Positions 32,566 through 56,871 of a stretch of DNA of 64,000 nt are shown here, piece after piece. Position numbers and translations under genes: made by a program. Under the pieces are notes generated by a model that saw nothing but the letters and a program-made list of their open reading frames with translations, had not been told where the DNA came from and searched no databases. The stretch lies in the sequence record NC_049850.1; one strand, given 5' to 3'. Position 1 is the stretch's first letter. Each line of letters starts with the position of its first letter.

Positions 32566-34296
32566 TTAAATTGCCTCTGGTGCCTTTTGTTTGGCTTCGT
32601 CCTGCTTGGCCACGGCTTCGATTGCTGCGTCCCACGCCTCTGCCGGAATGTCTCCGGAAGCCGCGTAGTCAGCCAGCGCTTCGATCAGGGAGTTGAGCGC
32701 TTCGACGTTCGACTCGGTGCCCGCACTCTTGTTCGTCAGCCCCTGACCGCTTTGGCCCGGGATGTCTATGTCGATCAGGCGAAGCGCGGCGGTCACGGTA
32801 GCGGACTGGCGTGCACCATCGACCCCGAGTTCGTCGATTTCACGCTTCAGCAGTTCGTGCCACTCTTGCTGTGACACCGGAACCCATTCGCACTTGAAGT
32901 ACCCCATGCCGGACTCTGCTTCGTCGAGACCCGCAAGTGCCGAGTGCGCTATTGTCCACAGCCGTTCCGGGCCCAGATATTGTAGGGCCATGAAGAGCAG
33001 GGCACCAACAGGACCCAGCTTCTCGATAGCTTCACGCATCGACGAGGATTGAAGCAGTTCGGCCATGATACGGGCGGCTGCGTCCTGACCACCTGATTGC
33101 TCGACTGCGGCTCGACGCAGTGCCGCGATCTTGCCGTTTGCGTCCGGCATATCGTGCATGATGGCCTTGGCCAGATTGCCTGAGTGAGCGCGAAGATGAC
33201 CTGCGGCGTTTACACGGTCCTCGGAGCCGGGGGCCGTGCCGCCATTGGCGATGAAGGCTTGTGCTTCTCGCGCGAGTCTCGTCATTGCGACGCCTGCGCG
33301 ATCACCACGTGGTGAATACGGTGCGGAAGCCGGGCCCGGCCCGTGAGTTGGGGTCGAGCCAGCAGGACGCGAAGGAGCGATGGTGGGTGCGGGTGTAGCA
33401 GGACGCGGATTCTCACGCTCGCGTTTCGTCTCTTTATCCTGAACGCCCACTCCGTGACCCTGACCGTACTCTTGCGCGTACTTGCTCTTCGGGTGCTCCT
33501 TGACATACCGCTGTCGCATTTCCGGGGTCATGAATTCCCACCACTCGTCCTTCGGATCGTAGGTGTCCGAATGCTGGGAGTTCGGGTGTGTCTCCGTGTA
33601 CTTCTGACGTTGCTCCGGCGTCATGTTCCCCCACCAGTCCTCACCTTTGGCCGTGACCAGAAGGCGTGCTACCGCTTGCATATTCGTACTCCCATTTTCG
33701 TCGTCGGTCTCCAGCCCGGAGCGAACACGCGAGCGCTTTACGGGTTTACGCTTTGGCACACGCGGCTTGTAGTCTGTCTTGGTGGTCTCAGCCAGCGCAA
33801 AGTCGCTGCCGTAGGCGCGCTTGCGGTCTTCGGCAGAGCGCCGCTGCTCCGGAGTCAACGATTTCCATTCCTTCTCCGGCATGTACACATAGGTGCTCTT
33901 GTCCTTCCAGTAGCCGTACGGTGAGAACTGCTGCTTCGAGTTCAACATAGCCTGCGTGTACTTGAACTTCACCTTTCGCTTGGAGCCATCCGTCAACTTG
34001 AACTCGGCACCACTGGGCAATCCATTCTTGTTGTAGAAGACTCGCTTAGGAGTACCGCCCAAAGCCTCGACAAACCAGCCCCGTATCTTGGAGCTAAGCG
34101 TCTCCACGGCCACGGGATCGTGTTCGTCGGACTCCAGTTCAACGTCGCGCTCGTCAGGTTTAGCCCCGGGATGAAATCCCTGCGCGTACTTGGAATGTGG
34201 GTGCTCCTTGAGATATTCGCGCTTCTGAAAATCAGAGAGCGAATCGAACCACGTGGCAGACTCTACCAGACGATGTTTCGCTGTGATAGTCGTCAT
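32566..34296 (-). CDS. hypothetical protein (576 aa) with three W-x5-(Q/M)-x3-Y-x3-HP-x-S repeats; possible internal head protein
   Basis: repeats and three AAxRL-like motifs visible in translation. Confidence 0.75.
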   Translation of the reverse strand: MTTITAKHRLVESATWFDSLSDFQKREYLKEHPHSKYAQGFHPGAKPDERDVELESDEHDPVAVETLSSKIRGWFVEALGGTPKRVFYNKNGLPSGAEFKLTDGSKRKVKFKYTQAMLNSKQQFSPYGYWKDKSTYVYMPEKEWKSLTPEQRRSAEDRKRAYGSDFALAETTKTDYKPRVPKRKPVKRSRVRSGLETDDENGSTNMQAVARLLVTAKGEDWWGNMTPEQRQKYTETHPNSQHSDTYDPKDEWWEFMTPEMRQRYVKEHPKSKYAQEYGQGHGVGVQDKETKRERENPRPATPAPTIAPSRPAGSTPTHGPGPASAPYSPRGDRAGVAMTRLAREAQAFIANGGTAPGSEDRVNAAGHLRAHSGNLAKAIMHDMPDANGKIAALRRAAVEQSGGQDAAARIMAELLQSSSMREAIEKLGPVGALLFMALQYLGPERLWTIAHSALAGLDEAESGMGYFKCEWVPVSQQEWHELLKREIDELGVDGARQSATVTAALRLIDIDIPGQSGQGLTNKSAGTESNVEALNSLIEALADYAASGDIPAEAWDAAIEAVAKQDEAKQKAPEAI

Positions 34297-34353
34297 TGTC
34301 TAATCCTTATGAAAAACAGGGCAACCTAATGCCCCGCTCCTTATTTACGAGGA

Positions 34354-34857
34354 TCAGTCGATTAGGTAATCGAATGCCCACGTGATGTTGAGAGTCACGA
34401 GGTTCGAGGCTGAGCCGTCGAGTTCTACGTCCGCAACCGAAGCGGGCCACAGGCCGACGACGGTGATGGTACGGCTCACTTCCGGCAGATCGTTGTACAC
34501 CACAAGCTGAGCCGTGCACTTGTAGGCGCTTGCAAACGAGCCGCTGTTGTTGAGCCACGAGCGCGTCATTTCGGACCACGCGTAGAACTGCGCACGCGTG
34601 TTCCAGTCGCTCGACTCCATGAACGTGGTGTTGAACGTGTGTTCGAAGGTCTTGCGGCCCGCGTACACGAGTTCGACGCCGTGCAGCGGGACGGTCACGC
34701 GGTCCATCGAGAAGCCGGGGAGCGCGGTGCTCATGCACTTCCACGTGAGGGCGCGCGTGTCGCTCGAACCCGGGATCGCAGGCAGGAACAGGTCAAAGTT
34801 CCACGACTGTGCCGGGTCAGCCACGGCCTGAACGTCATACAGGCTAGAACGTGCCAT
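34354..34857 (-). CDS. tail tube protein (T4 gp19-like, 167 aa)
   Basis: DPAQSWNFDL...YAGRKTF...LWPASVADVELD...LNITWAFDY pattern; downstream of sheath. Confidence 0.8.
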   Translation of the reverse strand: MARSSLYDVQAVADPAQSWNFDLFLPAIPGSSDTRALTWKCMSTALPGFSMDRVTVPLHGVELVYAGRKTFEHTFNTTFMESSDWNTRAQFYAWSEMTRSWLNNSGSFASAYKCTAQLVVYNDLPEVSRTITVVGLWPASVADVELDGSASNLVTLNITWAFDYLID

Positions 34858-34899
34858 AATTGTACTCCATGTTGAATTGGTTAGGTCTGCACGATAAAA

Positions 34900-35253
34900 T
34901 TAACCGCCAGAACCTACGGGCTGCACCGGACGATTCCACAGCGGATCGGGATCAAAACCACCAGACTGCCCAACGGGCAGCGGGGTATCGTCCACGGCAT
35001 CGTCGAACCCGGGGTTCGGTTTCATGTCGTGCTTGATCTGCGTGTTGTTGTACATGCTGTGGTTCAGGTCTTCGGCCACCAGTCGATGCGCTGCCTTTGT
35101 GGGCGCGCGTTTCTCTGGGGCCTCGTCGCTGGCATCGGTTTGCCTTTCGTTGAGATCGTTTTGGTTCTCCGGCCCGTACGAGCGCCCGGGAGCGATTGTG
35201 TCTCCCGGGATCGTAGATGTGGCCAGCAACCGGGCGGCTGCTTCGAGTTTCAT
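34900..35253 (-). CDS. hypothetical protein (117 aa) with two AAxRL motifs
   Basis: between sheath and tube; MKLEAAARLLATS. Confidence 0.7.
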   Translation of the reverse strand: MKLEAAARLLATSTIPGDTIAPGRSYGPENQNDLNERQTDASDEAPEKRAPTKAAHRLVAEDLNHSMYNNTQIKHDMKPNPGFDDAVDDTPLPVGQSGGFDPDPLWNRPVQPVGSGG

Positions 35254-35295
35254 TCGGTGTCCTATTCAAAAACGGGGGCCAAGTGCCCCCGTTGC

Positions 35296-37293: not shown

Positions 37294-37295
37294 GA

Positions 37296-38746: not shown

Positions 38747-39835
38747 TTAGACGCGCAGGCCAGCAGCCACCGAACGCGAGTTCGCGACCGAGATAGCCAG
38801 CGACTCGAACATCACCCAGCCACGACCCGGCACCTTCTCGATGCTGATGTCGATCGGCTGCGATTGCAGGCCGCCGCGATCCGAGTACGCACCGTGGTTC
38901 AGCGCGTCCGAGATCACGAAGAATTCGCCTTGATCCAGCACCTTGTGCTCGCGGTGACGGTACGCGTCCGACGTGATCGCGCAGCCGTACAGCGTGCCGA
39001 GTTCACCGGTCAGCAGGAGTTCGTGACGCGCAACCGGGTCGATTGCCGTGAAGAAGTCCGAGTTGCCGATGATGTCCTGATACAGGTCCGACGCCATCAG
39101 AACGTGCGGTGCCTTCAGGCCCCAGCGCGTGACGTTCGTCATCACTTGCGCGAACGTGTACGGCGTGAGTTGGCCGCTGATGATCGAGAGCGGGTTGTCC
39201 ACACCGATCAGTGCCTTGACCTGCGAATACCACAGGCGGTCTTCACCGACCATGATTGCTTCGGTCGCTTCGACGTACTTCTCTTGCAGCACGTCACCGG
39301 CCGACTGGTTGAGTTCGTTCTGCGGAATGAACGGTCGCGTGACCAGTTGCAGTTCCGGCGGCGTGAACCACTTGTCGCGCGTGATCTGCGCCTGAATCTT
39401 CGTCGGGCTCGTCGAGTAGACGGCCGTCACGTTCTTCGTGCGCAGCGGGAAGCGAACGATTGCGCCTTGCTCCACGTCGATACGCGTCAGGTACTTCCGT
39501 GCGAAGCCCTGACGGTTACACGTGATGTACAGCGAGTCGGCCATACGCTCGCCCAGCACGCGGTGCGCTTCGCTGTCGTTGAACGCAGCCTGCACCAGTT
39601 CCTTGCTGATCTTCGCGCCTTGCTCTGCCGACGCGAACACTGCGTCGCTGGCGGTTTCACCGCGCGAGCTTGCTGCCAGAAACTCCATCTGGCGGTTCAT
39701 GAGTTCGCGCTTGCTGCCCGCGTTCAGTTCACCGTTGTGGCCGACAGCGCGCTCGTTCGAGCCTTCGAAACGAAATTCGGAAGCTGCGACCATGGGCTTC
39801 TTCGTCGCAGTCACTTGGATTTTGTTGGTACGCAT
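38747..39835 (-). CDS. major capsid protein (HK97-fold expected, 362 aa)
   Basis: size, strongly biased codons, position after protease/scaffold/decoration and before tail genes. Confidence 0.8.
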   Translation of the reverse strand: MRTNKIQVTATKKPMVAASEFRFEGSNERAVGHNGELNAGSKRELMNRQMEFLAASSRGETASDAVFASAEQGAKISKELVQAAFNDSEAHRVLGERMADSLYITCNRQGFARKYLTRIDVEQGAIVRFPLRTKNVTAVYSTSPTKIQAQITRDKWFTPPELQLVTRPFIPQNELNQSAGDVLQEKYVEATEAIMVGEDRLWYSQVKALIGVDNPLSIISGQLTPYTFAQVMTNVTRWGLKAPHVLMASDLYQDIIGNSDFFTAIDPVARHELLLTGELGTLYGCAITSDAYRHREHKVLDQGEFFVISDALNHGAYSDRGGLQSQPIDISIEKVPGRGWVMFESLAISVANSRSVAAGLRV

Positions 39836-40732: not shown

Positions 40733-42439
40733 TTACATACCGAACGGCAGTGCAGCTTCACCCGAGAGGATTGCTGCTGCGGTGACCGACATGCCGCCAC
40801 GACGCGAAGCCGTCGTTGCTTGGCGGCGGGGCGATGCGTAGCCCGGGCGTGCCGAGAACAGTGCAGCCTTCACCGAGGTCGGTGCGCGCGAATCTTCTTC
40901 GAACTGGTCAACGAATTCCGGACCGGTGTCGCATGCTGCCGCGTCGGTTTCGTGATCGTCTTCCTCTTCGTCCATGCCTTCGTCATCGCCCAGCATGTTC
41001 AGTGCCGTGACGTGCGAATTGCGGACTTCGACCGGCAGTTCACGCAGTTGCGAGGCAATCGTCAGGATCGCCTTCGCGTAGTCGACGCCTGCGCTTGCGA
41101 ACACGCGACGGATCAGCTTCTCGGCACCGCGCACGCCCGCAGCCGAGAACTCGGCTTCCAGCGATGCACGCAGTTCGTTGCGAACGTCCTTGAAGTAGCC
41201 AGCGCGGTTGATACCGACAGCCGCGATTGCCATACACTGGTCCATCGCCTCGTCTTGCGCTTGCGCTTCGGCACGGAGACCCGCCGTCAGCTTCAGGGCC
41301 TTGGCCTCGACGCGCTTGTTCAGCACGTCAGCCTTGCCCAGATTCACGGTTGCGAGAACGAAGCCCATGCCCTTCAGACCGGCACGCAGACCGTGCTTTT
41401 CCATTTCGCTGGCCGTGACCGATGCGAAGTTGTCCGAAAGATACATCTTGTCGACACCGGCCTTGACTGCTTGGCGCTGCGACAGGTTTGCGATCACGCG
41501 CGGGCCCTTGAGGACGCGCACGTCGGTGCCCACGTTTGCGAACACCACGTCTTCCACGTCGTCGTCCGGCACACCGTCGATGTCGACGATAGGCATTTCT
41601 TCTTCGGCCGGTGCGTTCTGGAGGATTTCGTCGTCCGTCACCGTGTCCAGTGCCGGAGTCGTCACACCCGGTTCGTCTTCAGCGTCTTCGAACGTGTCGA
41701 CATCGGCAACCGCGCCCGGTTCGAGCATCAGCGATTGTTCGGTAGCGCCTGCACCCGGTTCGAGTTCCGCACCCGAATCGGCGTTCGGGAGCACCGGAGC
41801 GGTGCCCGGTTCTGCGCCGTCGGTCGGGGTTTCGCCCGTCGTGATGTAGCCGTCTGCCGGATCGATGTCGTTCGGCATCGTCTGCGTCGACTGCTGGCCG
41901 ACTTCACCGGTCTCGTGGGCACGACGCGAAGCCAAGCCATCGCCTGCGGCCTCGACGCCCGAATCCGTGCTCGTGTCTTCCGACGCGTCCGGATCGTTGT
42001 GGATCGCGGGGCCTGCGGGGGCCTCGTCGTTGCGCAGTTCGTCAGCGATGTTCGGGCTCTGGTCTTCGAAACCGGCCTCGGTCGGAACCTTGGGCTTCGA
42101 TTGCGGTGCCAGCTTGACTTCGCCCGGATGCTTCTTCGGCTTGTCGAGCGCCTTGCCCGGTTCGACCTTCGGGCCGCCTTCGTCAGCAGCAGCCGTGGTC
42201 TTGCCGCCGTTCATGCGGTTTGTCTTTTCCGAGAACTTCGTGTCGTTGTTGAAGTGCGTCGAACCGCCCGGCTCTTCGCCCGGCTCGTGCAGCATTTCAG
42301 CCTTCGTCGAACCGTGACGCAGTTTCACTTCCGAGGTCTCGGCCGCTTTCGTCGTTTCGTTCGGGAAGTGGAGCGAGGTGGAAGCCGCGTTTTCACGAGC
42401 AGCCACGACTTGTTCCTTTTCTTTCGTCAGGATTGCCAT
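40733..42439 (-). CDS. putative prohead scaffold/core protein (568 aa)
   Basis: acidic low-complexity N-half, helical C-half; between protease and capsid genes. Confidence 0.55.
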   Translation of the reverse strand: MAILTKEKEQVVAARENAASTSLHFPNETTKAAETSEVKLRHGSTKAEMLHEPGEEPGGSTHFNNDTKFSEKTNRMNGGKTTAAADEGGPKVEPGKALDKPKKHPGEVKLAPQSKPKVPTEAGFEDQSPNIADELRNDEAPAGPAIHNDPDASEDTSTDSGVEAAGDGLASRRAHETGEVGQQSTQTMPNDIDPADGYITTGETPTDGAEPGTAPVLPNADSGAELEPGAGATEQSLMLEPGAVADVDTFEDAEDEPGVTTPALDTVTDDEILQNAPAEEEMPIVDIDGVPDDDVEDVVFANVGTDVRVLKGPRVIANLSQRQAVKAGVDKMYLSDNFASVTASEMEKHGLRAGLKGMGFVLATVNLGKADVLNKRVEAKALKLTAGLRAEAQAQDEAMDQCMAIAAVGINRAGYFKDVRNELRASLEAEFSAAGVRGAEKLIRRVFASAGVDYAKAILTIASQLRELPVEVRNSHVTALNMLGDDEGMDEEEDDHETDAAACDTGPEFVDQFEEDSRAPTSVKAALFSARPGYASPRRQATTASRRGGMSVTAAAILSGEAALPFGM

Positions 42440-42569: not shown

Positions 42570-43463
42570 TTACGTTAAAATTGAGTTCTGCGAATTGTTA
42601 CGCGCCACAGAACCAAAATCCACCACATTGTCCGAGAGTGCGGGTGCCCACGCCGGGTCCTTCACAATCGAACACTCAATCGGCTGAATTCCGTGAGCAT
42701 TCAGGAATGCCAAATGAGTAGAGCCGTCGAAATCGCGATATTTCTTCCAGTTCACGTTTTTCGTGCCCGTGATGTGGCCGCACGTGTGTCGCGTAGAGCA
42801 CGAGGCCCCGCAGTAACCGCACGTGAAATACTCGACAAGAGCACCCATCGAGTAGGTGTTGATTTCCTTCGTCAGCACTTTCTGTGCAACATCCGGATAC
42901 TTGTTCTTATCGATGGCCAGCAACCCCATCACCTTCCAAAGCTTCCCGTCACCGTAGCCGTCGACTTTGTGGAACGACGCATCGAGGATGATGCCGTACG
43001 CACGTTCGTGGACTTCGTTGTCATGTTCTAGGTGGACTGGGCAACCCTTCCACGCCTTATACGACATGCGGTTCGTCGGGGGCGGCAGGAAACGCGCGAG
43101 TTCATCGCGCGGAAACGCGATACCGTTTCGGTTCGGGATATCGGACGGACACACCAGCGTGTTGACGATGATGTAATCCTCGATGCGCGGGCTGATCTTG
43201 TAGGTTTGTGCTGCGAACGGAAGCCACGTTTCGTAGTCCAGACGAGATACCAGTGTCTGGTCCTTCTCTGCGTCCATCGTTTCCTGTGCCACACCAACGT
43301 TGTCACCACGCCCCGTGCGCATCGCCTCGTGTTGCGCTTCACCCTGATCGATCTCGGGCGCGCGTTGCGGATTCAAGTTCTCGATTTCGTGGGGAGTCGT
43401 AGTGGAGTCCGAACGAATCTGTTGGGGCTTCTTGCCCCATGCGCTTGGCATCATTGGTTTCAT
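42570..43463 (-). CDS. prohead (maturation) protease with C-terminal Cys/His zinc-finger-like motif (297 aa)
   Basis: PNRNGIAF, PVHLEH (His), YSMGA (Ser), then CGYCGASCSTRHTCGH; synteny. Confidence 0.8.
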   Translation of the reverse strand: MKPMMPSAWGKKPQQIRSDSTTTPHEIENLNPQRAPEIDQGEAQHEAMRTGRGDNVGVAQETMDAEKDQTLVSRLDYETWLPFAAQTYKISPRIEDYIIVNTLVCPSDIPNRNGIAFPRDELARFLPPPTNRMSYKAWKGCPVHLEHDNEVHERAYGIILDASFHKVDGYGDGKLWKVMGLLAIDKNKYPDVAQKVLTKEINTYSMGALVEYFTCGYCGASCSTRHTCGHITGTKNVNWKKYRDFDGSTHLAFLNAHGIQPIECSIVKDPAWAPALSDNVVDFGSVARNNSQNSILT

Positions 43464-44495: not shown

Positions 44496-47400
44496 TCAGC
44501 TTAGCACTCGAACTTTCAATGCTTTCATCTTCTTGAACTGCCCGTTGAGGGTGGCCGCATTTTGCACCGTAACCCCCATTTCCTTCAATTTTCGTGCAGT
44601 TTCGCGTATTTCTGCGATTGTGCCGAACCGGATCAGGCGTGCTGGGTGTACCTTCCACTCAGCCTTTTGCTTCGTTTTCCTCACCGCATTTTTCGTTCCC
44701 GGCTGACCCGAGCCGCGCGGCAACATCAGGTACGCCTTTCCGTTTTCGAACACCGGGTACGGAGTGATCTGCGTGTCGTCGGCGCTGGCCACGTGCTGCG
44801 TCACGTAGAAGTTCGGAAGCTTGGCCGAAGCCGCTGCCTTGATCCGATCCTGCGTGTCCGATTTCGCAACCAACTCATCGTGGAATCCACCGAACCAGCG
44901 TTGGGCCCCAGCCTTCATGAACTTTTTCGGGTGCCCGATACCAGCGTCAGCCCATGCGTTCAGGATCGAGACGAAATGCTTAGGTCCCTTGAGCGCGGCA
45001 CGCGTCGACGCAGGAGCGGCCCGGAAGCCAGCAGCCTGCAACGTCTGGACCACCGTCATGTTTTCCATGTCGCCGTCGTACATCAACCCAGCGTACCCGT
45101 TGTGGTCGACGAGACTCAGCTTCATGGTCAGAGCCTTCTTGCGCTCGCGGTCACGAGTGCGCTGCTCACGTGCCTGTCTACGCAGTTCCTTGACCTTCTG
45201 GGCCTTCGACTGCGCGCGGCTCAGCGTGTATCCAGCAGCCTGTACGTCACCCACGTTCACGAGGCGGAAACCCTTGACCTCGGCCATGCGCTCACGGATC
45301 GTCCTGCCTTCCACCACTTCCTCAACCAAGAACGTGCTGGCTTTGCGCACACGAACCGAGAATCCAGAGTTCAGACGAACCGTCAAATGTTTGGCACGAG
45401 CGCCACACCTGACGATTTCACCTTCCCCGAATTCGGTGTGCACTGCGCGTCCCTTCAATCCGGACAGCGCGGCGTCCACTGCATCATCCAGCGACTCGGC
45501 CCCGTCGTCGGCTGTAGCGTAGTCGTCCTCCACCTGATTCAGGTGATCGTCGATTCGCACCAGCCCAAGTTCGGCCATGGCCACCACGTTCGAACCCGGT
45601 GAGTACGGAACCAGTGACATGAAGCCCACATCCTTCGGTGCCGGTGCCACTGGAATTCGACGCATAGACGGCGCGGTCCCATACTTCTTGACGTACGCCT
45701 GTCGATACTGCTCGTAGTCCTCATCGCGCACACGCTCAAAAGCCGAAAGCGCCTTTGCGTACTCCATCAGGCCCGGCCGATCTTCGCTGACGAACTCCCA
45801 CGTGTTGAACGATAGAATCGAGTCAAGCGACATCTTGATCACCGGCACAGTCGGAAGTTCGGAGTACAGCGGATTGTCCGCGTTCTCGAACTGAGCAACG
45901 CTGATCACCTTCGAGATCAGGCGCGCGGCCTTCGTCACGTCGATGGTCTTGTTGACGGTGAACGAATCGAAGAACACGAACTCCCGACGATCCTCCGACT
46001 TCAGTTCCGGTCGGTTGGCCCGGCTGTTACCCTGTTCGAGAGTACCCGGACTCCACACAACTTCGGATCGGCAGATGCGCGAGACGAACTGGAAGTTGAG
46101 ACCTTCGTTCATCGAGACCTCGACACCCACCATCCAACGGATGCGTGCCATCTTCTCGAAGCGTCGGCCGTGCTCCATCTTGTTCTCGGCCTTATAGAGC
46201 ATCCCGCATTCGCGTAGCTCCGGAGGCGCAAGACGCCAGACTTCCTCAGCCGATATCACGTTGTTCGTGAACACCAGTACCTTGCCGTCAAACGGGCCGT
46301 ACGGTGCCTTCTTTCCGGTCTCCGGATCGATGGCCTCACCACCAAACAGGTGAGCGGCCACACGCTTCAGAATCATCTTGACCTTCGGGCTGTCGCGATC
46401 CGCGCCGTGGAGAAGTTGGGAACCCAAAGGATCGTGACCCGGTGCCATCAGGAACTGCTCAAGCCGGGCCAGATACGGGCGCAGGAGCGACGCCAAGTCG
46501 TTGCCTGCATCTTCGTCGTGCTCGTCGTCGCCTTCCTCTTGCTCTTCTACGTCGGCGCGCATGGCCTTGCGATCATGGCGGCCTAGGAATCGCGACAGTT
46601 CGGAGTTCTCACGAGCCGCCTCTTCGATCTTCTGGATCGTTTCCTCCAGAATCGAGTCGTACACAGCCTGTTGGTTCGGGGTCAATTCGCAGCCCCCGAT
46701 CCATTCGCGCTTCGTCGGTAGGAACGCAGCCCACTCTTTCCGCATCGCGCCCGCAACAACCACACGCTGCTTGATCTTGCGCATGATCTGCTCTTGTGCT
46801 CCGGGCTTCCAGAGCTTGACGCGGCCACCACTCACCTCTTCACCGTACTTGGCGTTGAACTCGTCACGAGTCCCGAACAGTGTGGGGTCCATCGACGCCA
46901 CCTGCATTGCCATGTCGCTCGGGCTATCGTGTGCCATTGTCCCGGATGCCAGCCGAATCTTCGGGATATCGGTGATCAGGCACATGGACGCAAACGTCCG
47001 AGCCGTGTCGTTCTTCACGCGGTGACTCTCGTCGAGACCCGCATAGCAGAAACGGAACTGACGCAGAAAGTCGATGATCGGGTACACGACAACCGGCGTC
47101 GTCCCGTAGCACACGTTGTACTGACGGTAGCGCAGCGCATCGTAGTCACACACGACCACGGTGTTGCGAGGTGCGCTCTCCAGCATCTTCTGCAAGCGCT
47201 CCAGTCCATGCACCCGAATGTTCTCCATCGAGATCGGGATCACATTCATCTGGCCGCCCGTGAAGTACAGCATTTCGTTCACGTAGTTGGCCAGCAGGTG
47301 ACCCGGGCACAGCACAACATACGGCGCGAACCGGTTGTGCAGAATCTCGATCAGGATGTCAGTGATCAGCAACAGCGATTTGCCACCGCCCGCCTGAACC

Positions 47401-49100
47401 GGAAGCAGTGCGAACAACGGGGATTCACGCAGGATGTTCCGAATTTTGAACTGGTGAGGCAACAGCCCAACCTTTCGCAATTCGTCGAGAAGCGGGATCG
47501 CCTCGATCTGCCACTCCGGGTCTTCCCCCTGAGTGATCGCGGCGTTGCGCAGGCGCACGTCCTCAGCGCGCAGTTCCGCCAAGCGCGGCCCGTACTCGGC
47601 TACCATGATCAGCCACGGCATCAACTCGCTCACCGTCTTCACCGAATACTCGGTGTACACGGCTTCGAGGTTCTTGCTGATGGCCGCACGAATGGCCTTG
47701 AAGTAACGGGCGAGCGGACGGAACGCAGAGAACCCGGTCTCCAGAATATGCGCCCAATACACGTCGTCGACGAACTGCGGATCGTATTCGAACGCATCTG
47801 CCGCATACTGGAACCACTCGACCGGATTCGTCATGGTCTTGAGCGTGCCACGCAGCACGGCGTTCTTCACGTCTGCCAGATCGGATTCGGCAGGATTGAA
47901 GGCTTGGGCCGAAGTGACCCCAACCTTTTCTCCCATGGCCACCAGCAACTCAATCTGGCGCACCTGAACACGGCGCTCTTCCATGAGCACGCGGATGTGC
48001 GGAATCTCGGCGGCCCGGTGACGGGTTAGATCGGTGACCTGAAGATGGCCCAGCGATCCTGTGTACGCGTACTTGTTGTTCACCCAGTCGACGAGCACAG
48101 GCACGTTCTTCGGGAGCTTGGCTTTCGGCTCGTGCCCGGCACGATGGGCCTCGGCACCCTCCGTCAGATCGATCAGGGCGTATGCACCATCGGCGCGTGT
48201 GCCCGCCTGCTTGTACCGTTCCTCATAGTCGATGACCTGCGCCAGCGGTATGGATTTCGGGATGAAGTAGGGCTTGCCGTTCGGGCCGATGGACAGCAGG
48301 TGCTCGTTGACGCGTGCGCTCTCTACGTGCGAGGCAGGAAGCGTGTGCGCAATCTTCGAGATCGGGAACGCAGCCACAGGCGTCGTTCCGCGTTCCCCGA
48401 AAGCGTCACCTACCCACTGATGAAGCATCGGGTAGATGTCGATCTCACGCAGCGACGCCCATTCGGTAGTCGTCATCTGCTGAGCCTCGGCTTTCGTGAT
48501 CCGGAAGTCGAGGAATACGACTGCGAGACTGCCCTTCGTGGAGATTCGAAGCCGGTACAGGCATTGACGAATTTGGGCAGCTATAGGCTCCGGAACGTGG
48601 TGAGCCTCGCGCAGCACGCGGTCGACGGGCCACACAAGATCGGGCTGCTCGGGCGTCCGCGCCTCCAACATGGCGCGCAAACGCTCGATGTCAGCCGTGT
48701 GTGCGGTGGTCGCGCGCGGAGGCTCCCCATCACGCGAACGACGAATGAAGTTCTCGAAGAGGAACCGGAAGCCAGACTCAGGAGCCGATACCGGAAACGC
48801 GTAGACTGGCACCGCACACTCGACGTAGCCGAGTTCACGTTGCACCTTGACGCGCAGGTAGTTTGCGTTGACTGCACGTCCCGGAATCTCAACGAGGTGC
48901 ATCTTGCGCTTGCCCTTCCCGAATTCAGGGTCGCGGGCAACGCTAGGAAACAGGGTGTTGGCCCAGAGCTTGGTGACGAACACCGTGGGCGAGCCGGTGT
49001 ACCGCTTCGTGTACATGCACATGAAACGGGACTTCAGAGCCTTGCGATCCAGCGCCAAGTGCTCGGGTACAACGAGGTTGGTTGTTGGTCTGAGTGCCAT
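44496..49100 (-). CDS. large SF2 (SNF2/Swi2-like) helicase-family protein (1534 aa)
   Basis: LLPHQ, QAGGGKS (I), LDESH (II), ASGT (III), MNEGLNFQ (V), EQGNSRANR (VI). Confidence 0.85.
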   Translation of the reverse strand: MALRPTTNLVVPEHLALDRKALKSRFMCMYTKRYTGSPTVFVTKLWANTLFPSVARDPEFGKGKRKMHLVEIPGRAVNANYLRVKVQRELGYVECAVPVYAFPVSAPESGFRFLFENFIRRSRDGEPPRATTAHTADIERLRAMLEARTPEQPDLVWPVDRVLREAHHVPEPIAAQIRQCLYRLRISTKGSLAVVFLDFRITKAEAQQMTTTEWASLREIDIYPMLHQWVGDAFGERGTTPVAAFPISKIAHTLPASHVESARVNEHLLSIGPNGKPYFIPKSIPLAQVIDYEERYKQAGTRADGAYALIDLTEGAEAHRAGHEPKAKLPKNVPVLVDWVNNKYAYTGSLGHLQVTDLTRHRAAEIPHIRVLMEERRVQVRQIELLVAMGEKVGVTSAQAFNPAESDLADVKNAVLRGTLKTMTNPVEWFQYAADAFEYDPQFVDDVYWAHILETGFSAFRPLARYFKAIRAAISKNLEAVYTEYSVKTVSELMPWLIMVAEYGPRLAELRAEDVRLRNAAITQGEDPEWQIEAIPLLDELRKVGLLPHQFKIRNILRESPLFALLPVQAGGGKSLLLITDILIEILHNRFAPYVVLCPGHLLANYVNEMLYFTGGQMNVIPISMENIRVHGLERLQKMLESAPRNTVVVCDYDALRYRQYNVCYGTTPVVVYPIIDFLRQFRFCYAGLDESHRVKNDTARTFASMCLITDIPKIRLASGTMAHDSPSDMAMQVASMDPTLFGTRDEFNAKYGEEVSGGRVKLWKPGAQEQIMRKIKQRVVVAGAMRKEWAAFLPTKREWIGGCELTPNQQAVYDSILEETIQKIEEAARENSELSRFLGRHDRKAMRADVEEQEEGDDEHDEDAGNDLASLLRPYLARLEQFLMAPGHDPLGSQLLHGADRDSPKVKMILKRVAAHLFGGEAIDPETGKKAPYGPFDGKVLVFTNNVISAEEVWRLAPPELRECGMLYKAENKMEHGRRFEKMARIRWMVGVEVSMNEGLNFQFVSRICRSEVVWSPGTLEQGNSRANRPELKSEDRREFVFFDSFTVNKTIDVTKAARLISKVISVAQFENADNPLYSELPTVPVIKMSLDSILSFNTWEFVSEDRPGLMEYAKALSAFERVRDEDYEQYRQAYVKKYGTAPSMRRIPVAPAPKDVGFMSLVPYSPGSNVVAMAELGLVRIDDHLNQVEDDYATADDGAESLDDAVDAALSGLKGRAVHTEFGEGEIVRCGARAKHLTVRLNSGFSVRVRKASTFLVEEVVEGRTIRERMAEVKGFRLVNVGDVQAAGYTLSRAQSKAQKVKELRRQAREQRTRDRERKKALTMKLSLVDHNGYAGLMYDGDMENMTVVQTLQAAGFRAAPASTRAALKGPKHFVSILNAWADAGIGHPKKFMKAGAQRWFGGFHDELVAKSDTQDRIKAAASAKLPNFYVTQHVASADDTQITPYPVFENGKAYLMLPRGSGQPGTKNAVRKTKQKAEWKVHPARLIRFGTIAEIRETARKLKEMGVTVQNAATLNGQFKKMKALKVRVLS

Positions 49101-49901: not shown

Positions 49902-50354
49902 TCACTGGCCCATGAGGCGACGTGCCGCCGAGATCGCGATGCTGTTGTCCTCGACGGCTGCGGTAACGGAAGCCAGTTGCACGTCATCGCGTTCGAGTTG
50001 CTGTTCGTGGCTCGGTGTGTCGAAGCCGCCGTCATCGTACAGGTCTGCCTGATCGCGCGCGTCACCTGCCCCCATGTTCGGCGCGCTATCGTTGAGGGCA
50101 ACCCGATCCGGGCTCGTGGTGCCGGGATCGTAGTCATCGACCAGCACCTCTTGGTCCTTCGACAGCGGAGCCGCTTGCTGCTCCAGCGGCTGGCCGTTCT
50201 CTTGCTGCCCGAGCATGCGGTAGCTGATGGCTTCCAGCGTCTCGTGGTCGACGCCCACCGATTCAGCCAGCATGTGGAACTGCTGGTCGCTCGGCTGGGG
50301 GTTGATCTGGAGGAAGAGTTCGATCAGCGCTTCCAGAATTTGCGGGTTCTTCAT
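49902..50354 (-). CDS. acidic hypothetical protein (150 aa) with C-terminal ISAARRLM motif
   Basis: AAGGA RBS. Confidence 0.75.
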   Translation of the reverse strand: MKNPQILEALIELFLQINPQPSDQQFHMLAESVGVDHETLEAISYRMLGQQENGQPLEQQAAPLSKDQEVLVDDYDPGTTSPDRVALNDSAPNMGAGDARDQADLYDDGGFDTPSHEQQLERDDVQLASVTAAVEDNSIAISAARRLMGQ

Positions 50355-50363
50355 GTGTAGTCC

Positions 50364-50681
50364 TTAACCGCGACGTGCGCGGTGCAAGTGGTTATGTCGC
50401 TTGTCGTGGCAACCTTGGCAAAGGCTGATGAGATTGGCCGGGGAGTTCGTGCCTCCCGACGACAGGGGCACCAGATGGTGCACCTCGTTTGCCGGTTTCT
50501 TGCACTGCTTTCCTCCGATAAGGGCACGGCACAGACCACCGTCTCTCGCGATGATCTTGGCCCTGATCTCCCACCAACCAGCCTTCGTCTGCATTCCGTT
50601 GACGGTGTTGTAGTTCTCGCGTCGGATTGACCCGACACCAGAACTGCCACGACGTGCGCTCCTGATTCGGCGTGCGAACAT
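50364..50681 (-). CDS. HNH endonuclease (105 aa)
   Basis: RDGGLC...C...EVHHLVPLSSGGTNSPANLISLCQGCHDKRH; TAATG overlap. Confidence 0.9.
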   Translation of the reverse strand: MFARRIRSARRGSSGVGSIRRENYNTVNGMQTKAGWWEIRAKIIARDGGLCRALIGGKQCKKPANEVHHLVPLSSGGTNSPANLISLCQGCHDKRHNHLHRARRG

Positions 50682-51076
50682 TATGCGCTGAAGAAGATGC
50701 GCAGGTCTTTGCCGATGCGCTGGATCACGATGCGGTGCTGGCCCTTGCACGAGAAGTTCGGGCGCGAGAGAACGCCCTTGTGCACCATCATCTTGTACCC
50801 CATCTTGTTCAGGATGTTGATGGTGGCCTGCGCTTCGTCCTCGATTTCGAGCGGATTGCTCTTGTGGAAAAGATGGTTCTTGCCCATCGAGTAGCGCAAG
50901 CGATTGCTGCCGAGAGTGGTGCGCACGTGTTCGAGTTCGTGATCGCGCGCCGTGTCAAACTTACCATCGACCTCGACATCGGCTGCGACAGGAGTTTCGT
51001 GGCCCGGTGCCAAATGCTCGGCGCGAGGTTCGGGTGCTGTCGCGAGCAATCGCTTTGCTGCTTCTACTGCAAACAT
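50681..51076 (-). CDS. hypothetical protein (131 aa) with N-terminal VEAAKRLLATA motif
   Basis: AGGAG RBS. Confidence 0.75.
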   Translation of the reverse strand: MFAVEAAKRLLATAPEPRAEHLAPGHETPVAADVEVDGKFDTARDHELEHVRTTLGSNRLRYSMGKNHLFHKSNPLEIEDEAQATINILNKMGYKMMVHKGVLSRPNFSCKGQHRIVIQRIGKDLRIFFSA

Positions 51077-52692: not shown

Positions 52693-53067
52693 TTAAGCAC
52701 CTGTCGCGAGACGTTGTGCTGCCGTGATGGTGGGGGCCGAGTACAGGTTCGGGCCCGCGCCCGTGTCTTCATCCGGGTCCTGCACTTCTTCGACGTTCGT
52801 GTCGATCTTCGGCGGTGCATCGGCCGTATCGATTTCGTGCTCCGGCTTCGCGGCCTCGGCGTCGTCACCGTGGAGCGATGATGCGTAGAGGCGGTTAGCC
52901 GCGTTGAGTTCGATGGTTGCAGTTGCGTTCGTCATGATTTGCTTCTCCGTTTTGCAGGCTGTGCACCAGCCGTTGGGACCACCGCATTTAGTGCGTAGGC
53001 CATCCGGACGCGGGCGCACGTGCCCATGACCCGAGTTCGGGTTGTTGATGTCAAAATCGAAACTCAT
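52693..53067 (-). CDS. hypothetical protein (124 aa) with two AAxRL motifs
   Basis: IELNAANRLYAS and ITAAQRLATGA. Confidence 0.7.
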   Translation of the reverse strand: MSFDFDINNPNSGHGHVRPRPDGLRTKCGGPNGWCTACKTEKQIMTNATATIELNAANRLYASSLHGDDAEAAKPEHEIDTADAPPKIDTNVEEVQDPDEDTGAGPNLYSAPTITAAQRLATGA

Positions 53068-53073
53068 TTTCGA

Positions 53074-53910
53074 TTACTTCAGTGCGGGCGGCAGGTCGCT
53101 ACCCAAGGGTGAATCGAACCCTTCGTCAGCCAGCATCGAGGCTGCGGCTTCGCAAACCTGCTGAACGTCCTGAAGGGGCGTGGTGCGTTCGAGGCTGTCA
53201 GGCGCACAGAACTCTTGGTTGATCTGCACGAAGTAGCCGGAGCCCAGAACCCATTGCAGCGACACGTACAGTGTTGGTACACGTCGGCCGTCATCGGCCT
53301 GCGCGCCGCTCAGCATCGTATACGACGTGAATACGAGGGAGCCAGAAGCATCCACGTTCACGTACAGGAACTGTTCGGTCCCGGCACACCGCACGTGGTT
53401 CTCCAGTTCTTGGGCCAGCGCCTGACGCACGTGATCGAAGGCTTCTGGCACATGCTGATGCGCAACGGCCGACAGGAATTCGAGCACCCGACGAATCTGG
53501 TCTTTGCCCTTGGCCTTCAGTTCGGCCAGCACCTGCTGCACACGAGCCGCCACCTCACCGCGTCGATCCGGGAACTGGAGCGCCACCTGAGCTTCAACGG
53601 CTTCGAGCGCTCGATACTGGTCGTAGATTTCCTCGGCAGTACCGTACTGCGCATCCAGCTTCTTGACGTGCGGGACGACCACGCGCTTGATAGTCGCGTC
53701 GACCGAGGCTCCGCGCAGACTGGCTGTTACGTTCTCCTTCGGTTTCGTGAGGTAGGCCACTGCCTGTTGCTGGACTCGAATCAGGTTCTCGGACTCGGAC
53801 ACGTCGTCCCGAAGCTTGTCCAGATAACGCGACACGTCATCCAGATAGCGAAACTTCGGTAGCTCCAGCGTGCACGCGCGCGGCTCCTGATAGGTCTTTG
53901 GCTTTGCCAA
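53074..53910 (-). CDS. hypothetical protein (278 aa)
   Basis: abuts upstream stop; AGGAG RBS. Confidence 0.7.
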   Translation of the reverse strand: MAKPKTYQEPRACTLELPKFRYLDDVSRYLDKLRDDVSESENLIRVQQQAVAYLTKPKENVTASLRGASVDATIKRVVVPHVKKLDAQYGTAEEIYDQYRALEAVEAQVALQFPDRRGEVAARVQQVLAELKAKGKDQIRRVLEFLSAVAHQHVPEAFDHVRQALAQELENHVRCAGTEQFLYVNVDASGSLVFTSYTMLSGAQADDGRRVPTLYVSLQWVLGSGYFVQINQEFCAPDSLERTTPLQDVQQVCEAAASMLADEGFDSPLGSDLPPALK

Positions 53911-55146
53911 TTACGTTCTCCTGATACCTGTTACGTTGTCCCGTGCCATCAGCGTGGTCGGAGGCTTGGTCTGGGTGCGGGCACGGCGTGGTAGCAACCG
54001 GAAAATTTCCTGTGGCTGCGTTACCCGCACCATGGCCTCCCACCCCAAGATGTTGCGCTCACGCGTGTTCCACGGGTTGGTGTTCTGCACTATCAGGGCC
54101 TTACCGAACTGGCGCTCGACGATGATGTCCTCGGTGTCGGCACGCGGGCAGTTCGGGCTCATGATGATGTTGAATGGCTCGTCTTTCTCCAGAAGTGCCG
54201 TGTTATTGCCAGACGGTCGCTTCGGAAATTCAAAGTACACCGATTCTGCGCTAAGCCCGAACTGTAGTTCAAGGTGTGTGAATCGTGTAAAGCCAGAGGC
54301 CCCCAGAATGTGTTGACGCCCATCACAGAACTGCATGAAGTGCTGGGCGCTACGGATCGGCACGCTGTCGACCGTGAAGCGAGCCGGTGTCGGCTCCGTA
54401 TCGTTCCAGACGCGCAGCGCGTCAACGAGTATGGCACCGCGCGGCAGCACTACCCTCACGTCAAAGCCAGTTGCGTCGACCGCCAGCGGCCGTGCCAGCG
54501 TGTCCATAACGCCGCCGTCACGCACCTGCACGTCGGTACACGTCAACACCTGCCGGTGACCACGGAACGGGGTGTACCCGCCAATGTAGCCAGAGCCAAA
54601 GCAGATCGGGCACGAGTTGTCGGAATGCCCCATCATACCGGCGTCGAGATCACCGATGGCTTCTTCGACAGTCTCAGCCTGCACCGGCCCGTTGTCACCA
54701 AACCCGTTTCCGTTGATCAGGTCTGCGAACGGTATGTCGTCAAGATTCTCTGCGTTGTCCGGATGCACTGCAACGTCAAAGACGCCTTGGTATTTGTTGT
54801 CCGGCGCGTTCGGGCTTGACTGACCCTCCGGGACCTTGCGGTTCTGGTTGTAGGCAGTGACGTTGAATTCCAGCGCGCCACTGATCATCTGGTTGATGGC
54901 ACCGATACTGGCCTTGCCCTCTTCGTTGAGCAGGCCGTTGATGCGTTTGCGCCGGGCCTGACACGTGCACGGGCGACCATTCGTGAGTTTCGTGTACAGG
55001 ATAGACTCGATACCCTGCGGCCGGAATGCGTTATAGTAACGCTGTTGCATGACCGGCAGGATTTCTTGAATCGCCTTTTCCGCCACGTCGGCTGCGCGAG
55101 AGTTCGCGGCCAAGATGCGGTTGTTGTTTGATTCGCGTACGGGCAT
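53911..55146 (-). CDS. putative neck/head-closure protein (T4 gp14-like, 411 aa) with PCTC and CPICFGSG motifs
   Basis: AGGAGG RBS; AATTTTAT motif upstream; function inferred from pattern and synteny. Confidence 0.55.
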   Translation of the reverse strand: MPVRESNNNRILAANSRAADVAEKAIQEILPVMQQRYYNAFRPQGIESILYTKLTNGRPCTCQARRKRINGLLNEEGKASIGAINQMISGALEFNVTAYNQNRKVPEGQSSPNAPDNKYQGVFDVAVHPDNAENLDDIPFADLINGNGFGDNGPVQAETVEEAIGDLDAGMMGHSDNSCPICFGSGYIGGYTPFRGHRQVLTCTDVQVRDGGVMDTLARPLAVDATGFDVRVVLPRGAILVDALRVWNDTEPTPARFTVDSVPIRSAQHFMQFCDGRQHILGASGFTRFTHLELQFGLSAESVYFEFPKRPSGNNTALLEKDEPFNIIMSPNCPRADTEDIIVERQFGKALIVQNTNPWNTRERNILGWEAMVRVTQPQEIFRLLPRRARTQTKPPTTLMARDNVTGIRRT

Positions 55147-55221
55147 AAGCCCTCCTAAACTATCACTACTGCATAAAATTGCGAGATCAAAACGGCAATA
55201 AGGGGCGCAAGGCCCCAAGTT

Positions 55222-55584
55222 TTACAGCTTGTACATGAGTGACGACGCACAATGCACGCCGTACCGCAAATCCGGCATCACGGTCTTCGTGCTATGCACC
55301 TTCACGTTCTTCGGATCGAGCATCCGGTCGACGGTGATGAACCCGTCCATGTTGATGGTGATTCGGTGCCCACGGCGTCGATGGTTGAAGTCGACGGACC
55401 GTGCGTACCAGCGCGTCTCCCACAATTCTTTGTGTTCTTCAGCCGTCTTCTTGAGTGCGTCTACGCAAAGCTCCCAGTTGCGGTTGCGCTTGGCATGTCG
55501 CGTATCAGGTTCTGCGTGATGTTCCCAGAAGAAGTGGGGCTTCGAGCCTTCGTGGACGGTGTGCGAGCGGGCCGGACGCGTCAT
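55222..55584 (-). CDS. hypothetical protein (120 aa)
   Basis: ATGA overlap with deaminase stop. Confidence 0.6.
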   Translation of the reverse strand: MTRPARSHTVHEGSKPHFFWEHHAEPDTRHAKRNRNWELCVDALKKTAEEHKELWETRWYARSVDFNHRRRGHRITINMDGFITVDRMLDPKNVKVHSTKTVMPDLRYGVHCASSLMYKL

Positions 55585-56030
55585 TCGCCCACCTTCCGGA
55601 CGATAACGCCCGATGCTTGCAGGAGAGGAAGGCCGTTCGACCGCTCGTATACATGCTGGTACACGACCTCTCGAATCTTGGCCCGGATCGTGTGGAGTGC
55701 GCACGGAATGCACGGCCCGTGCGTCGTGTACATGCGAGCGCCTTCCGCGCTTGCGGTCGATCCCGAGAACTTGGACAGTGCGTTGAACTCAGCGTGCATC
55801 ACCGTCGGCTTCGTCACCATTTCGAGGCGAGCCACACCGTGTGCACACTCGGTGACTGCGTGAAACCGCGTATCGTTGTCGTGGCCCGGAGGTGTTCCGT
55901 TCCAACCCAGCGTGATCATGTCGTCCGGCGTCACAATCGCGCAACCGACTCCGTGTTTCGGGTCCACCGACATGGATGCCGCCGAACTCGCGATCTCCAT
56001 GTAAAGCATGTCTTCGTTCTCTCGTCGCAT
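55581..56030 (-). CDS. dCMP deaminase (149 aa)
   Basis: VGCAIV...GWNGTPPG, HAEFNAL and PCIPC zinc motifs. Confidence 0.9.
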   Translation of the reverse strand: MRRENEDMLYMEIASSAASMSVDPKHGVGCAIVTPDDMITLGWNGTPPGHDNDTRFHAVTECAHGVARLEMVTKPTVMHAEFNALSKFSGSTASAEGARMYTTHGPCIPCALHTIRAKIREVVYQHVYERSNGLPLLQASGVIVRKVGE

Positions 56031-56079
56031 CTAAATCCTCTGTAAGTGATGTAGCTAAACATTCTACATCACCTGCAAA

Positions 56080-56295
56080 TTATTTACTACCGTTTTCTTT
56101 CGAATCCAGTAGCCGCTCGGCCGCGTGCAGTTCCACACCCCCAGTCATCTTGTGGTAGATGTAGTTCTGCAATGCGTATTTGTTGTCGGGGTGGGATTTC
56201 TTGGCAGCGTCCCCTGCCTTGTCCCACTTCTTCTCCAGCGACTCCTTGCTGCCCTTCCCTTCCTTAACGTCGTGTTTGATCATGTTGTTCGGCAT
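56080..56295 (-). CDS. small basic protein (71 aa) with C-terminal VELHAAERLLDS motif
   Basis: GGAG RBS. Confidence 0.7.
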   Translation of the reverse strand: MPNNMIKHDVKEGKGSKESLEKKWDKAGDAAKKSHPDNKYALQNYIYHKMTGGVELHAAERLLDSKENGSK

Positions 56296-56313
56296 TTCAG
56301 TCTCCGCGTTGAA

Positions 56314-56871
56314 TTACACCTGCGAGTGTTGTTCGGTGTTTTGCTGATCTTGTTCGATTTCGTGCGAATTGTAGCGAGGCGTGAGATTTCGGAAGAAGTT
56401 GATCGTCTTCATCGAAGGATCGTCGTTGAGCAATGCCTTGACGCCAACGTGCAAAGGCTGCACATCGCTTACCTCGTCGACCCAAACTGCCTGCGCCGTT
56501 TCCCAGTTCAGCGCAGGCTCGAATTCGTGCGGCACGATTGCCAGAAAGTTCTGGTAGCTCATGCCGGGGCCCCGGAATACGAGAAGCGGCATCAACTTGA
56601 CGGGGCCTCGATACCCTGCTTCTTCCTGCACCTCGCGGCGCACTGCCTGTGACACGTTCTCACCGTGGTCGACAGCGCCTCCCCATGTACCCCAGCAGTT
56701 CGGGTCGGACACGCCCTCGGAACGCAAAGGCATCAGGAATCGCCCGGTGTCAGCCGCCATGATCAGGCACCCGGCACACACCTTACCCCAGTAGTTTGGA
56801 TCGCTGGTCACGAGCGGCGGCAACCACTCGGTATCGCGGATATCGGTCAACAATCTGTACGCTGCTTCCAT
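56314..56871 (-). CDS. Nudix hydrolase (185 aa)
   Basis: Nudix box GGAVDHGENVSQAVRREVQEEAG; N-terminal MEAAYRLL. Confidence 0.9.
   Translation of the reverse strand: MEAAYRLLTDIRDTEWLPPLVTSDPNYWGKVCAGCLIMAADTGRFLMPLRSEGVSDPNCWGTWGGAVDHGENVSQAVRREVQEEAGYRGPVKLMPLLVFRGPGMSYQNFLAIVPHEFEPALNWETAQAVWVDEVSDVQPLHVGVKALLNDDPSMKTINFFRNLTPRYNSHEIEQDQQNTEQHSQV

Follow-up and report, generated by a model that had tools for sequence, protein, structure and literature searches.

Introduction

The internal proteins of bacteriophage T4 and its Alt protein carry a capsid-targeting sequence (CTS), a 10-19-residue N-terminal propeptide that gives them affinity for the scaffolding core. Injected anti-restriction proteins that are otherwise diverse have nothing conserved except the CTS; 10 residues from the start of internal protein III (IPIII) suffice, and foreign proteins furnished with the leader are packaged. 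Here we describe a short peptide, hereafter the tag, that recurs in otherwise unrelated proteins encoded among the late virion genes of Burkholderia phage BcepSaruman. The stretch analysed, hereafter the window, comprises 64,000 nucleotides and is identified by sequence identity as bases 1-64000 of the 263,735-bp genome (NC_049850.1). We propose that the tag is probably a portable virion-loading signal, a functional counterpart of the T4 CTS in the phiRSL1/BcepSaruman clade.

Head and ejection proteins of phages phiKZ and SPN3US carry N-terminal propeptides that are more than 100 residues long, terminate at A/S/G-x-E sites and have no short motif in common.

Encapsulin cargo-loading peptides are short and flexible in position, being N- or C-terminal on a flexible linker, and they dock cargo, enzymes included, inside a shell of the HK97 fold. 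Encapsulins, which are bacterial compartments, lack DNA, a tail and a maturation protease, and their cargo genes lie beside the shell gene. For the maturation protease of phage HK97, a short C-terminal capsid-targeting segment is sufficient for entry into the HK97-fold prohead.

An initial annotation of the window had likened the peptide to the leader of the T4 internal proteins, whose role is indeed established in the literature, and had called it an undescribed signal. That word appears correct, as we found no description of the tag in the literature on BcepSauron, RSL1 proteomics, the capsid-targeting sequence or jumbo-phage propeptides, and the original phiRSL1 GenBank record has no virion notes. 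The kind of system is known from T4; the new features are its sequence, the clade that uses it, its freedom of position and its scale, with at least 71 cargo families.

Results

Unrelated proteins of the window share a short peptide

BcepSaruman is a jumbo myophage of ~59% G+C; BcepSauron (97% nucleotide identity), Ralstonia phage phiRSL1 and Burkholderia phage BCSR5 are its closest relatives. According to the RefSeq annotation, the window holds 112 complete coding sequences (CDS; 18,236 amino acids). Small genes of unassigned function, mostly on the minus strand, occupy 1-29 kb, and from 31.7 kb a minus-strand block encodes the tail tube, the sheath, the major capsid protein (MCP), the head maturation protease, a 1534-residue helicase, a head-tail connector protein and many hypothetical proteins. 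All 11 peptides reported initially are present in annotated minus-strand CDS of the genes named for them, and their common core is hydrophobic-x-A-[A/K/V]-x-R-L. The peptide is thus shared as reported, but the strict form first given for it, [ILV]xAAxRL[LVY], fits 4 of the 11 and is too narrow. By place, 4 copies are N-terminal, 3 lie within the last 16 residues and 4 are internal.

To define enrichment over the 112 CDS, 2000 rounds of within-protein shuffling were used. AAxRL was observed 10 times against 1.39 expected and A[AKV]xRL[LVIMYA] 11 times against 0.98 expected, and for each of them 0 of the 2000 shuffles were as high. Permuted versions of the motif occurred 0-6 times, and the top one, AARxL with 6 occurrences, overlaps real tags. 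Since about one match of the regular expression is expected at random, one or two of the weaker window copies could be chance. The enrichment was also seen between the two arms of the window, where 0 of 73 early-arm proteins and 7 of 39 late-arm proteins are tagged (Fisher p = 4e-4). Moreover, when a 13-column tag profile trained on other genomes only was run over the 388 called BcepSaruman proteins (76,308 amino acids), gp077, gp251, gp094 and gp092 were the top four of the 388 (E <= 0.06), and 11 matches reached at least 10.8 bits against 1.46 expected. A compositional artefact is ruled out by the shuffles in the window, in this profile scan and in phage Motura (below), together with the permuted motifs.

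Across the clade, 81 N-terminal instances give the consensus K/E(-3) L/I(-2) N/Q/E(-1) A(0) A/K(1) x R(3) L(4) x A(6) T/A/S(7). The core spans ~9-13 residues, and the typical N-terminal form is M-K/E-L/I-N/Q/E-A-A/K-x-R-L-x-A-T/S/A. Sec, Tat and lipoprotein signals do not fit this consensus, which has an invariant Arg in its middle, small or polar surroundings, no Cys and no RR.

The seven carriers in the window had been called unrelated, and with their tags masked we found no significant similarity among them. Hidden paralogy is mostly ruled out in the wider set too, where gp251 and gp275 are the only related pair (E = 5e-7) and all other tag-masked pairs have E > 0.05. At the nucleotide level, the tag codons of the BcepSaruman copies differ at synonymous sites, and at the invariant A, R and L positions all synonymous codons are used at roughly genome frequencies. 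Because synonymous codons vary freely, selection acts on the peptide; the same two observations rule out a repeat or leader at the DNA level. In the N-terminally tagged genes, the annotated ATG has a Shine-Dalgarno-like sequence upstream, indicating that these tags lie at true N-termini. Taken together, the comparisons of sequence provide very strong evidence for the tag as real and functional.

Tagged genes are confined to virion-gene regions

We extended the regular-expression scan to the whole BcepSaruman genome and identified 14 copies in 9 proteins, the seven of the window plus gp251 and gp275. All 9 are encoded in two structural blocks that make up 67 of the 445 CDS (p = 2.5e-8), and none was found in the ~200 kb of early and replication genes. 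The only other pair of AAxRL matches, in gp126 (AAxRLGI), is part of a different internal repeat.

A similar picture emerged for Motura, whose complete genome was scanned with a profile from which Motura had been left out. We found 20 matches of at least 13.1 bits against 0.5 expected, 19 of which map within or next to the virion-gene region at 108-178 kb, where an array of tagged small genes flanks the connector gene on both sides. No matches above chance were found in the replication and early regions with this profile.

The tag is conserved across the phiRSL1-like clade

The tag had at first been described for the window only, yet it occurs throughout the phiRSL1-like clade, in phiRSL1, BCSR5, Motura and ~50 relatives known from metagenomes. 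In the syntenic block of phiRSL1, the products of ORF141 (twice), 133, 127, 125 (twice), 124, 123, 120, 117 and 112 are tagged, and both members carry the tag in the orthologue pairs gp092/ORF120, gp099/ORF112, gp090/ORF125 and gp077/ORF141. In Motura and BCSR5 the tag forms the opening residues of many proteins, for example MEIQAAYRLLAL, MEIQARARLAAA, MKIEAAARLKAATE and MKIMAASRLRAT.

Relatives were collected through the MCP gp082, which gave 55 IMG/VR loci with MCPs 52-100% identical and 705 unique proteins. In these loci 42% of A..RL matches fall within the first 13 residues, which hold 4.7% of positions. We also searched 2.9 million IMG/VR contigs with M[KE]LNAAxRLxA as a degenerate DNA pattern and obtained 22 matches. 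Nineteen of them are in contigs with Saruman-like structural genes or tag arrays, and three are singletons with neither, which by our own estimate is about the chance number for a pattern of roughly 36 bits. The tag is kept down to ~60-65% MCP identity while the flanking protein sequence is unrelated. It is used by phages of Burkholderia, Ralstonia and Achromobacter and follows the phage clade, not the host genus.

Tagged genes fill variable slots in a conserved backbone

Clade-wide carriers were counted at a tag score of at least 12 bits in the clade loci and the BcepSaruman proteome, 1091 unique proteins in all. Of these 106 are tagged, with a median length of 132 residues, and they fall into 71 families that are unrelated by BLAST after tag masking. 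They hold 110 tags: 76 within the first ~10 residues, 13 behind an internal Met, which probably reflect mis-set starts, 6 at the C-terminus and 15 at internal places. Overall, ~80% of the tags are found at the extreme N-terminus.

Gene maps of the relatives revealed the conserved backbone helicase-gp087-gp086-protease-scaffold-like gp084-gp083-MCP-gp081-gp080-gp079-sheath-tube-gp074. It is interrupted by four variable slots (protease/scaffold, sheath/tube, tube/gp074 and after gp074), which are filled almost only by tagged genes. Most of the tagged genes that fill these slots in relatives have no BcepSaruman homologue, and in locus L026 ~9 consecutive small genes begin MELNA(A/S)xRL. Recognisable domains are rare among the cargo. 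gp100 and its relatives have NUDIX, and one metagenomic relative has an RNase_T/DEDD exonuclease; Pfam and PHROGs searches gave no other matches for the tagged proteins. The helicase-like gp088 (1534 residues; 44496-49100) has no tag. Its fixed place in the head-gene backbone of every relative, adjoining gp087-gp086-protease, raises the possibility that it is a virion-packaged enzyme.

Members of one NUDIX hydrolase family carry different leaders

The tagged NUDIX hydrolase of BcepSaruman is gp100 (56314-56871, minus strand), whose single copy is MEAAYRLLT at residues 1-9 (56845-56871). Its closest homologues retain the tag as MDAAYRLLTT, MQAAFRLLGT, VTLNAASRLLTT and MTKLKAASRLLTA, and in phiRSL1 ORF109 it reads MKINSAFRLLVTS. 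In an AlphaFold2 model built with 43 homologues, residues 30-165 have a predicted local distance difference test score (pLDDT) above 94, and residues 1-29, tag included, have 46-54 with a short helix at residues 2-8. According to this model, the tag is an appendage on a predicted flexible arm and not part of the enzyme fold.

In Motura a 270-residue protein (L008 32231-33043; record 108240-109052) unites the gp099 family, a tag-like NAEHRLNAAAF and NUDIX in one chain, and the gp099-family and NUDIX genes are separate tagged genes in BcepSaruman and phiRSL1. RefSeq labels this fusion an A/G-specific adenine glycosylase, a label to which the Pfam result gives no support.

Distant members of the gp100 family begin with a different conserved leader. 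In one metagenomic ENA contig (k141_4292011, 152 kb; locus L066, 906-12298), the NUDIX homologue and at least six co-oriented neighbours have one common leader, with the versions MKAKEFITE, MKAKEFLIE, MRIHELIVE, MKIDDIIVE (the NUDIX protein), MLLFELFDN, MRLVEFAEG and MRIREIMET. The format is that of the T4 internal protein II (IPII) and IPIII leaders (NC_000866), and an uncultivated phage clade may here be using a packaging leader in the T4 style. Because gp100 bears the tag and its relative bears this leader, the same cargo enzyme seems to wear clade-specific leaders, an arrangement for which the sequences are suggestive.

Tag copies in the other BcepSaruman genes

The remaining six tagged genes of the window, like their tags, are all on the minus strand. 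gp077 (34900-35253) is placed between the sheath and tube genes and has two copies. Copy 1, LEAAARLLA (residues 3-11; 35221-35247), is N-terminal in a protein that starts MKLEAAARLLATS; it is the best profile match of the BcepSaruman proteome (28.0 bits, E=0.00), has a Shine-Dalgarno-like sequence 5' of its ATG and is kept in BcepSauron and phiRSL1 ORF141. The internal copy 2, TKAAHRLVA (residues 52-60; 35074-35100), has a weak profile score of 6.8 bits; it is kept in BcepSauron, and its counterpart in ORF141 is CTAAVQRLAKD. As a spot check, the coordinates of gp077 copy 1 and of the gp090 tag were re-translated.

Three copies occur in gp075 (32566-34296). The N-terminal one, ITAKHRLVE (residues 4-12; 34261-34287; 13.2 bits), stands in the protein start MTTITAKHRLVESATWF and is followed by a W(F/W)...EHPxSKYA module, and orthologues in 10 relatives begin with a canonical tag, for example MKLEAAKRLLLADGEWF and MRLQAATRLVVAEAEWW. 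The internal copy MQAVARLLV (residues 206-214; 33655-33681; 10.8 bits) is likewise followed by a WW...HPxS module, so that the tag-plus-module arrangement is repeated within the protein. The third copy, VTAALRLID (residues 501-509; 32770-32796), also internal, is the weakest; it is not among the listed profile matches, which reach down to 3.5 bits, and may be a chance match. In full, the module spans ~30 residues, W(W/F)xxL(S/T)xxxQxxY(I/L/V)(E/K)EHPxSKYA, and in the gp075 family it often stands directly after the tag. We identified it in gp075 and gp099 of the window and in loci L008, L013, L020, L025, L026, L028, L034, L035, L056, L059, L060 and L062; it is also present in unrelated clade proteins, and no Pfam family matches it.

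The tag of gp090 (49902-50354; 150 residues), ISAARRLMG (residues 141-149; 49908-49934), is C-terminal, too near the end of the protein for the 13-column profile to reach. Two copies, VQATARLRLTAAE and ESAALRLTAGE, lie internally in the gp090 orthologue, phiRSL1 ORF125. gp092 (50681-51076) carries one N-terminal copy, VEAAKRLLA (residues 4-12; 51041-51067; 17.2 bits, E=0.06), in the protein start MFAVEAAKRLLATA, and the tag is retained in its orthologues phiRSL1 ORF120 (MLKNAVHRLRAT) and a BCSR5 protein (MIKVHAAKRLAQS). Between gp090 and gp092 lies an HNH endonuclease gene, gp091 (50364-50681), at the same place as phiRSL1 ORF122.

gp094 (52693-53067; 124 residues) has an internal copy, LNAANRLYA (residues 54-62; 52882-52908; 21.6 bits, E=0.00), 9 residues past Met45, and a C-terminal copy, ITAAQRLAT (residues 114-122; 52702-52728), again too near the C-terminus for the profile. 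Residues ~12-40 of gp094 and a 405-residue Motura protein (L008 2611-3828) have in common an N-terminal GHGHV...C-GG...C-x-x-C segment that resembles a small zinc-binding module and lies upstream of the tag in both. In gp099 (56080-56295; 71 residues) the tag LHAAERLLD (residues 56-64; 56104-56130; 15.0 bits) is near the C-terminus, and its phiRSL1 counterpart ORF112 has NVTAAVQRLAATE at the same place. Outside the window, gp251 (152686-152955), directly after the portal gene, starts MEINAATRLVATE, and gp275 (177615-178100), whose gene lies with those for tail fibres, carries a copy at either end. A GIY-YIG homing endonuclease gene, gp070 (29498-30469), is encoded on the other strand, ~1.3 kb away from where the structural arm begins.

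Candidate partners and processing of the tag

The head maturation protease gp085 (42570-43463, minus strand; PHROG 18299, E=1e-87), a candidate processing enzyme for the tags, is itself without a tag copy. In relatives, a variable slot of tagged genes lies between the gp085-type protease and the scaffold-like gene. The AlphaFold2 model of gp085 is moderate (pLDDT 66), and its matches among the predicted structures of BFVD are named prohead serine protease, XkdF or COG3740; no PDB match was found, either by sequence or by the fold of the model. We also looked for the motif [ASG]xE within 14 residues after the tag and found it in 34% of cases against 18% of control windows, with two thirds of tags having none. 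The BCSR5 gene at the head-protease position (L009 15996-16988; record 139231-140223) is labelled 'endolysin' in GenBank, which by synteny with gp085 is probably a mis-annotation.

Candidate receptors are the scaffold-like acidic protein gp084 (40733-42439, minus strand) and the MCP gp082 (38747-39835, minus strand), which also served to gather the relatives. gp084 was considered as a self-tagged receptor and set aside, as a tag-like segment, located in the disordered N-terminal half, occurs in 3 of ~30 orthologues, which is uninformative. The N-terminal arm of gp082 contains GELNAGSKREL at residues 35-45 (39701-39733), with the clade form GE(L/I)NA(S/G)xK(R/K)(D/E)L. The opening half of this segment agrees with that of the tag (ELNA[AGS]), but the R-L register is different; the tag might imitate part of the capsid protein, or the likeness may be coincidental.

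Discussion

In this study, one short leader was found on many unrelated, fast-turnover proteins encoded among late virion genes, as with the T4 CTS, and for this reason we take the tag as a virion-loading signal. From the initial annotation's loading-signal reading, the part that stands is a real, selected and shared signal that is confined to virion blocks, conserved across the clade on hypervariable proteins and placed on a flexible arm in enzymes; the loading itself we put forward as probable. Evidence on the destination of the tagged proteins is circumstantial. The head interior is favoured, given the slot between protease and scaffold and the place of gp251 beside the portal gene.

We propose that the tag folds as a short amphipathic helix carried by a flexible arm. 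In a helical-wheel projection, the hydrophobic residue at -2, A0, A1, L4 and a frequent L5 are on one face and N/Q(-1), T/S(2) and R3 on the other, which fits a short amphipathic helix packing on a partner and agrees with the weak helix in the gp100 model. During particle assembly the tag would dock on a conserved component, which may be gp084, the inner face of the capsid protein or another core protein, and any tag-bearing protein would thereby be co-assembled into the particle. The multiple copies in gp075, gp077, gp094 and gp275 and the C-terminal copies suggest a docking peptide that does not need a free N-terminus. Tagged cargo would probably be released into the cell with the DNA, and the small orphan cargo proteins are plausibly counter-defence factors. 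As only the tag must be conserved in such a scheme, cargo genes could turn over freely.

The resemblance to the T4 CTS of IPI, IPII, IPIII and Alt lies in a short leader common to otherwise unrelated proteins, in an extreme N-terminal position for most, though not all, copies and in a non-conserved, hypervariable cargo of small proteins and an enzyme encoded in polymorphic loci. Several points nevertheless set the tag apart from the CTS or weigh against a loading signal of this kind. The tag is unrelated in sequence to the IPII/IPIII and IPI leaders (NC_000866) and is thus no homologue of them, only a possible functional analogue. About 20% of tag copies are internal or C-terminal, and several proteins have 2-3 copies. 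Packaging by the CTS is established, and packaging by the tag is predicted from sequence comparison. It belongs to another phage clade, in which the protease gp085 looks, by predicted fold, nearer to the HK97/XkdF type than to T4 gp21, so that cleavage after Glu cannot be assumed, and there is no conserved Glu site after the tag; a consistent protease site was not found there, [ASG]xE being enriched just ~2-fold. The neighbourhoods of gp077, between sheath and tube, and of gp275, among fibre genes, are those of tail genes, which makes another destination in the particle possible. Finally, the more distant phage PaBG (MCP 36% identical) has no tag in its structural block, which limits the tag to the phiRSL1-like clade.

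Other known systems are partly comparable. Like encapsulin peptides, the tag has N- and C-terminal copies and, by the AlphaFold2 model, a flexible arm, and its genes lie within ~20 kb of the MCP gene; the consensus is different, and MCP binding is only one of several candidate modes for the tag. By this analogy, the tag's freedom from the N-terminus resembles encapsulin peptides more than the T4 leader. The head-internal proteins of the jumbo phages phiKZ and SPN3US are comparable in that their N-termini are thought to direct incorporation and their paralogues can keep identical N-termini while the rest diverges, but the tag is a ~10-residue consensus common to 71 families. gp085 is closest in predicted fold to the class of the HK97 protease; the HK97 signal, however, is on a single protein, whereas the tag is on many cargo proteins and absent from gp085.

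We then considered what else the tag could be. It is unlikely, though the likeliest of the alternatives, that the tag docks at another assembly site (tail lumen, neck or baseplate) or binds an assembly chaperone without loading proteins into the head. Such a role would suit gp077 and its orthologues at sheath/tube, the slots after the tube gene, gp275 by the fibre genes and, in Motura, a gene at 177 kb with a fibre gene close by, as well as the C-terminal and internal copies, for which a free N-terminus is not required. However, other slots have the prohead protease gene as one direct neighbour and the scaffold-like gene as the other, gp251 comes after the portal gene, the location of a gene predicts place in the particle only poorly, and hypervariable small cargo and enzymes suit head-internal or ejected proteins better than structural tail parts. 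Somewhat less probable again is that the tag chiefly serves the head maturation protease as a site of recognition or cleavage, or acts as an inactivating propeptide, and is not the cause of incorporation. The T4 targeting leader is also a cleaved propeptide, the tag is mostly terminal on a flexible arm, and A/S-x-E is about two times as frequent behind it as in control windows, the clearest examples being from phiRSL1 (RLKATE, RLASTE, RLAATE). Against this, two thirds of tags have no such site nearby, and gp085 has an HK97/XkdF-like predicted fold, a type whose specificity, to our knowledge, is not Glu-directed. Moreover, where the tag lies 4-5 residues from the N-terminus or 7 from the C-terminus, a cut in the core would free a trivially small piece. 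A protease element would in any case be compatible with a loading signal and not exclusive of it.

We consider it improbable that the tag is a short linear motif for a host or phage hub in the infected cell with no link to the particle. Hub-binding peptides are typically short motifs that do not depend on position and lie on disordered arms, and the evidence on the tagged proteins is genomic. Yet the tagged genes are all co-oriented in late virion operons with 0 among ~300 early and replication genes of Saruman or Motura, the usual place for host-takeover factors, and the tag co-varies with phage clade, not host genus. The absence of any functional signal is hardly credible, whether the tag is seen as a by-product of an Ala/Arg/Leu-rich, high-GC proteome or as a DNA/RNA element at gene starts, such as a promoter-leader or recombination module. 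A genome of ~59% G+C, in which A, R and L are common residues, and the location of tags at gene boundaries would fit; but composition-preserving shuffles were never as high, permuted motifs were not enriched, the choice among synonymous codons at invariant residues is that of the genome, some copies are internal or C-terminal, and the peptide is kept to ~60-65% MCP identity with unrelated flanks.

A more far-reaching form of the virion-loading proposal is speculative, and we regard it as possible rather than probable. The tag would be a position-independent peptide that docks on the interior of the capsid or scaffold in an encapsulin-like manner, and would act at either terminus or within disordered regions. 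It would define a large and rapidly evolving injectome of at least 70 families in phiRSL1-like jumbo phages, including the nucleotide-degrading NUDIX and DEDD exonuclease enzymes, delivered with the DNA against host defences, and the NUDIX protein with the T4-style leader would be a natural leader swap between packaging systems.

The tag already aids annotation, as it confirms start codons and flags cargo genes. If it is a virion-loading signal, it would offer a ~10-residue handle to package foreign proteins in the large capsids of Burkholderia, Ralstonia and Achromobacter phages. It would also allow packaged, probably injected proteins to be listed from sequence, ~9 in BcepSaruman, at least 17 in Motura and 71 families in relatives; nearly all of them are orphans, which would make them prime candidates for new counter-defence factors. 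The arrangement of a conserved leader and free cargo would then have evolved a second time, independently, suggesting that it is a general solution for large phages.

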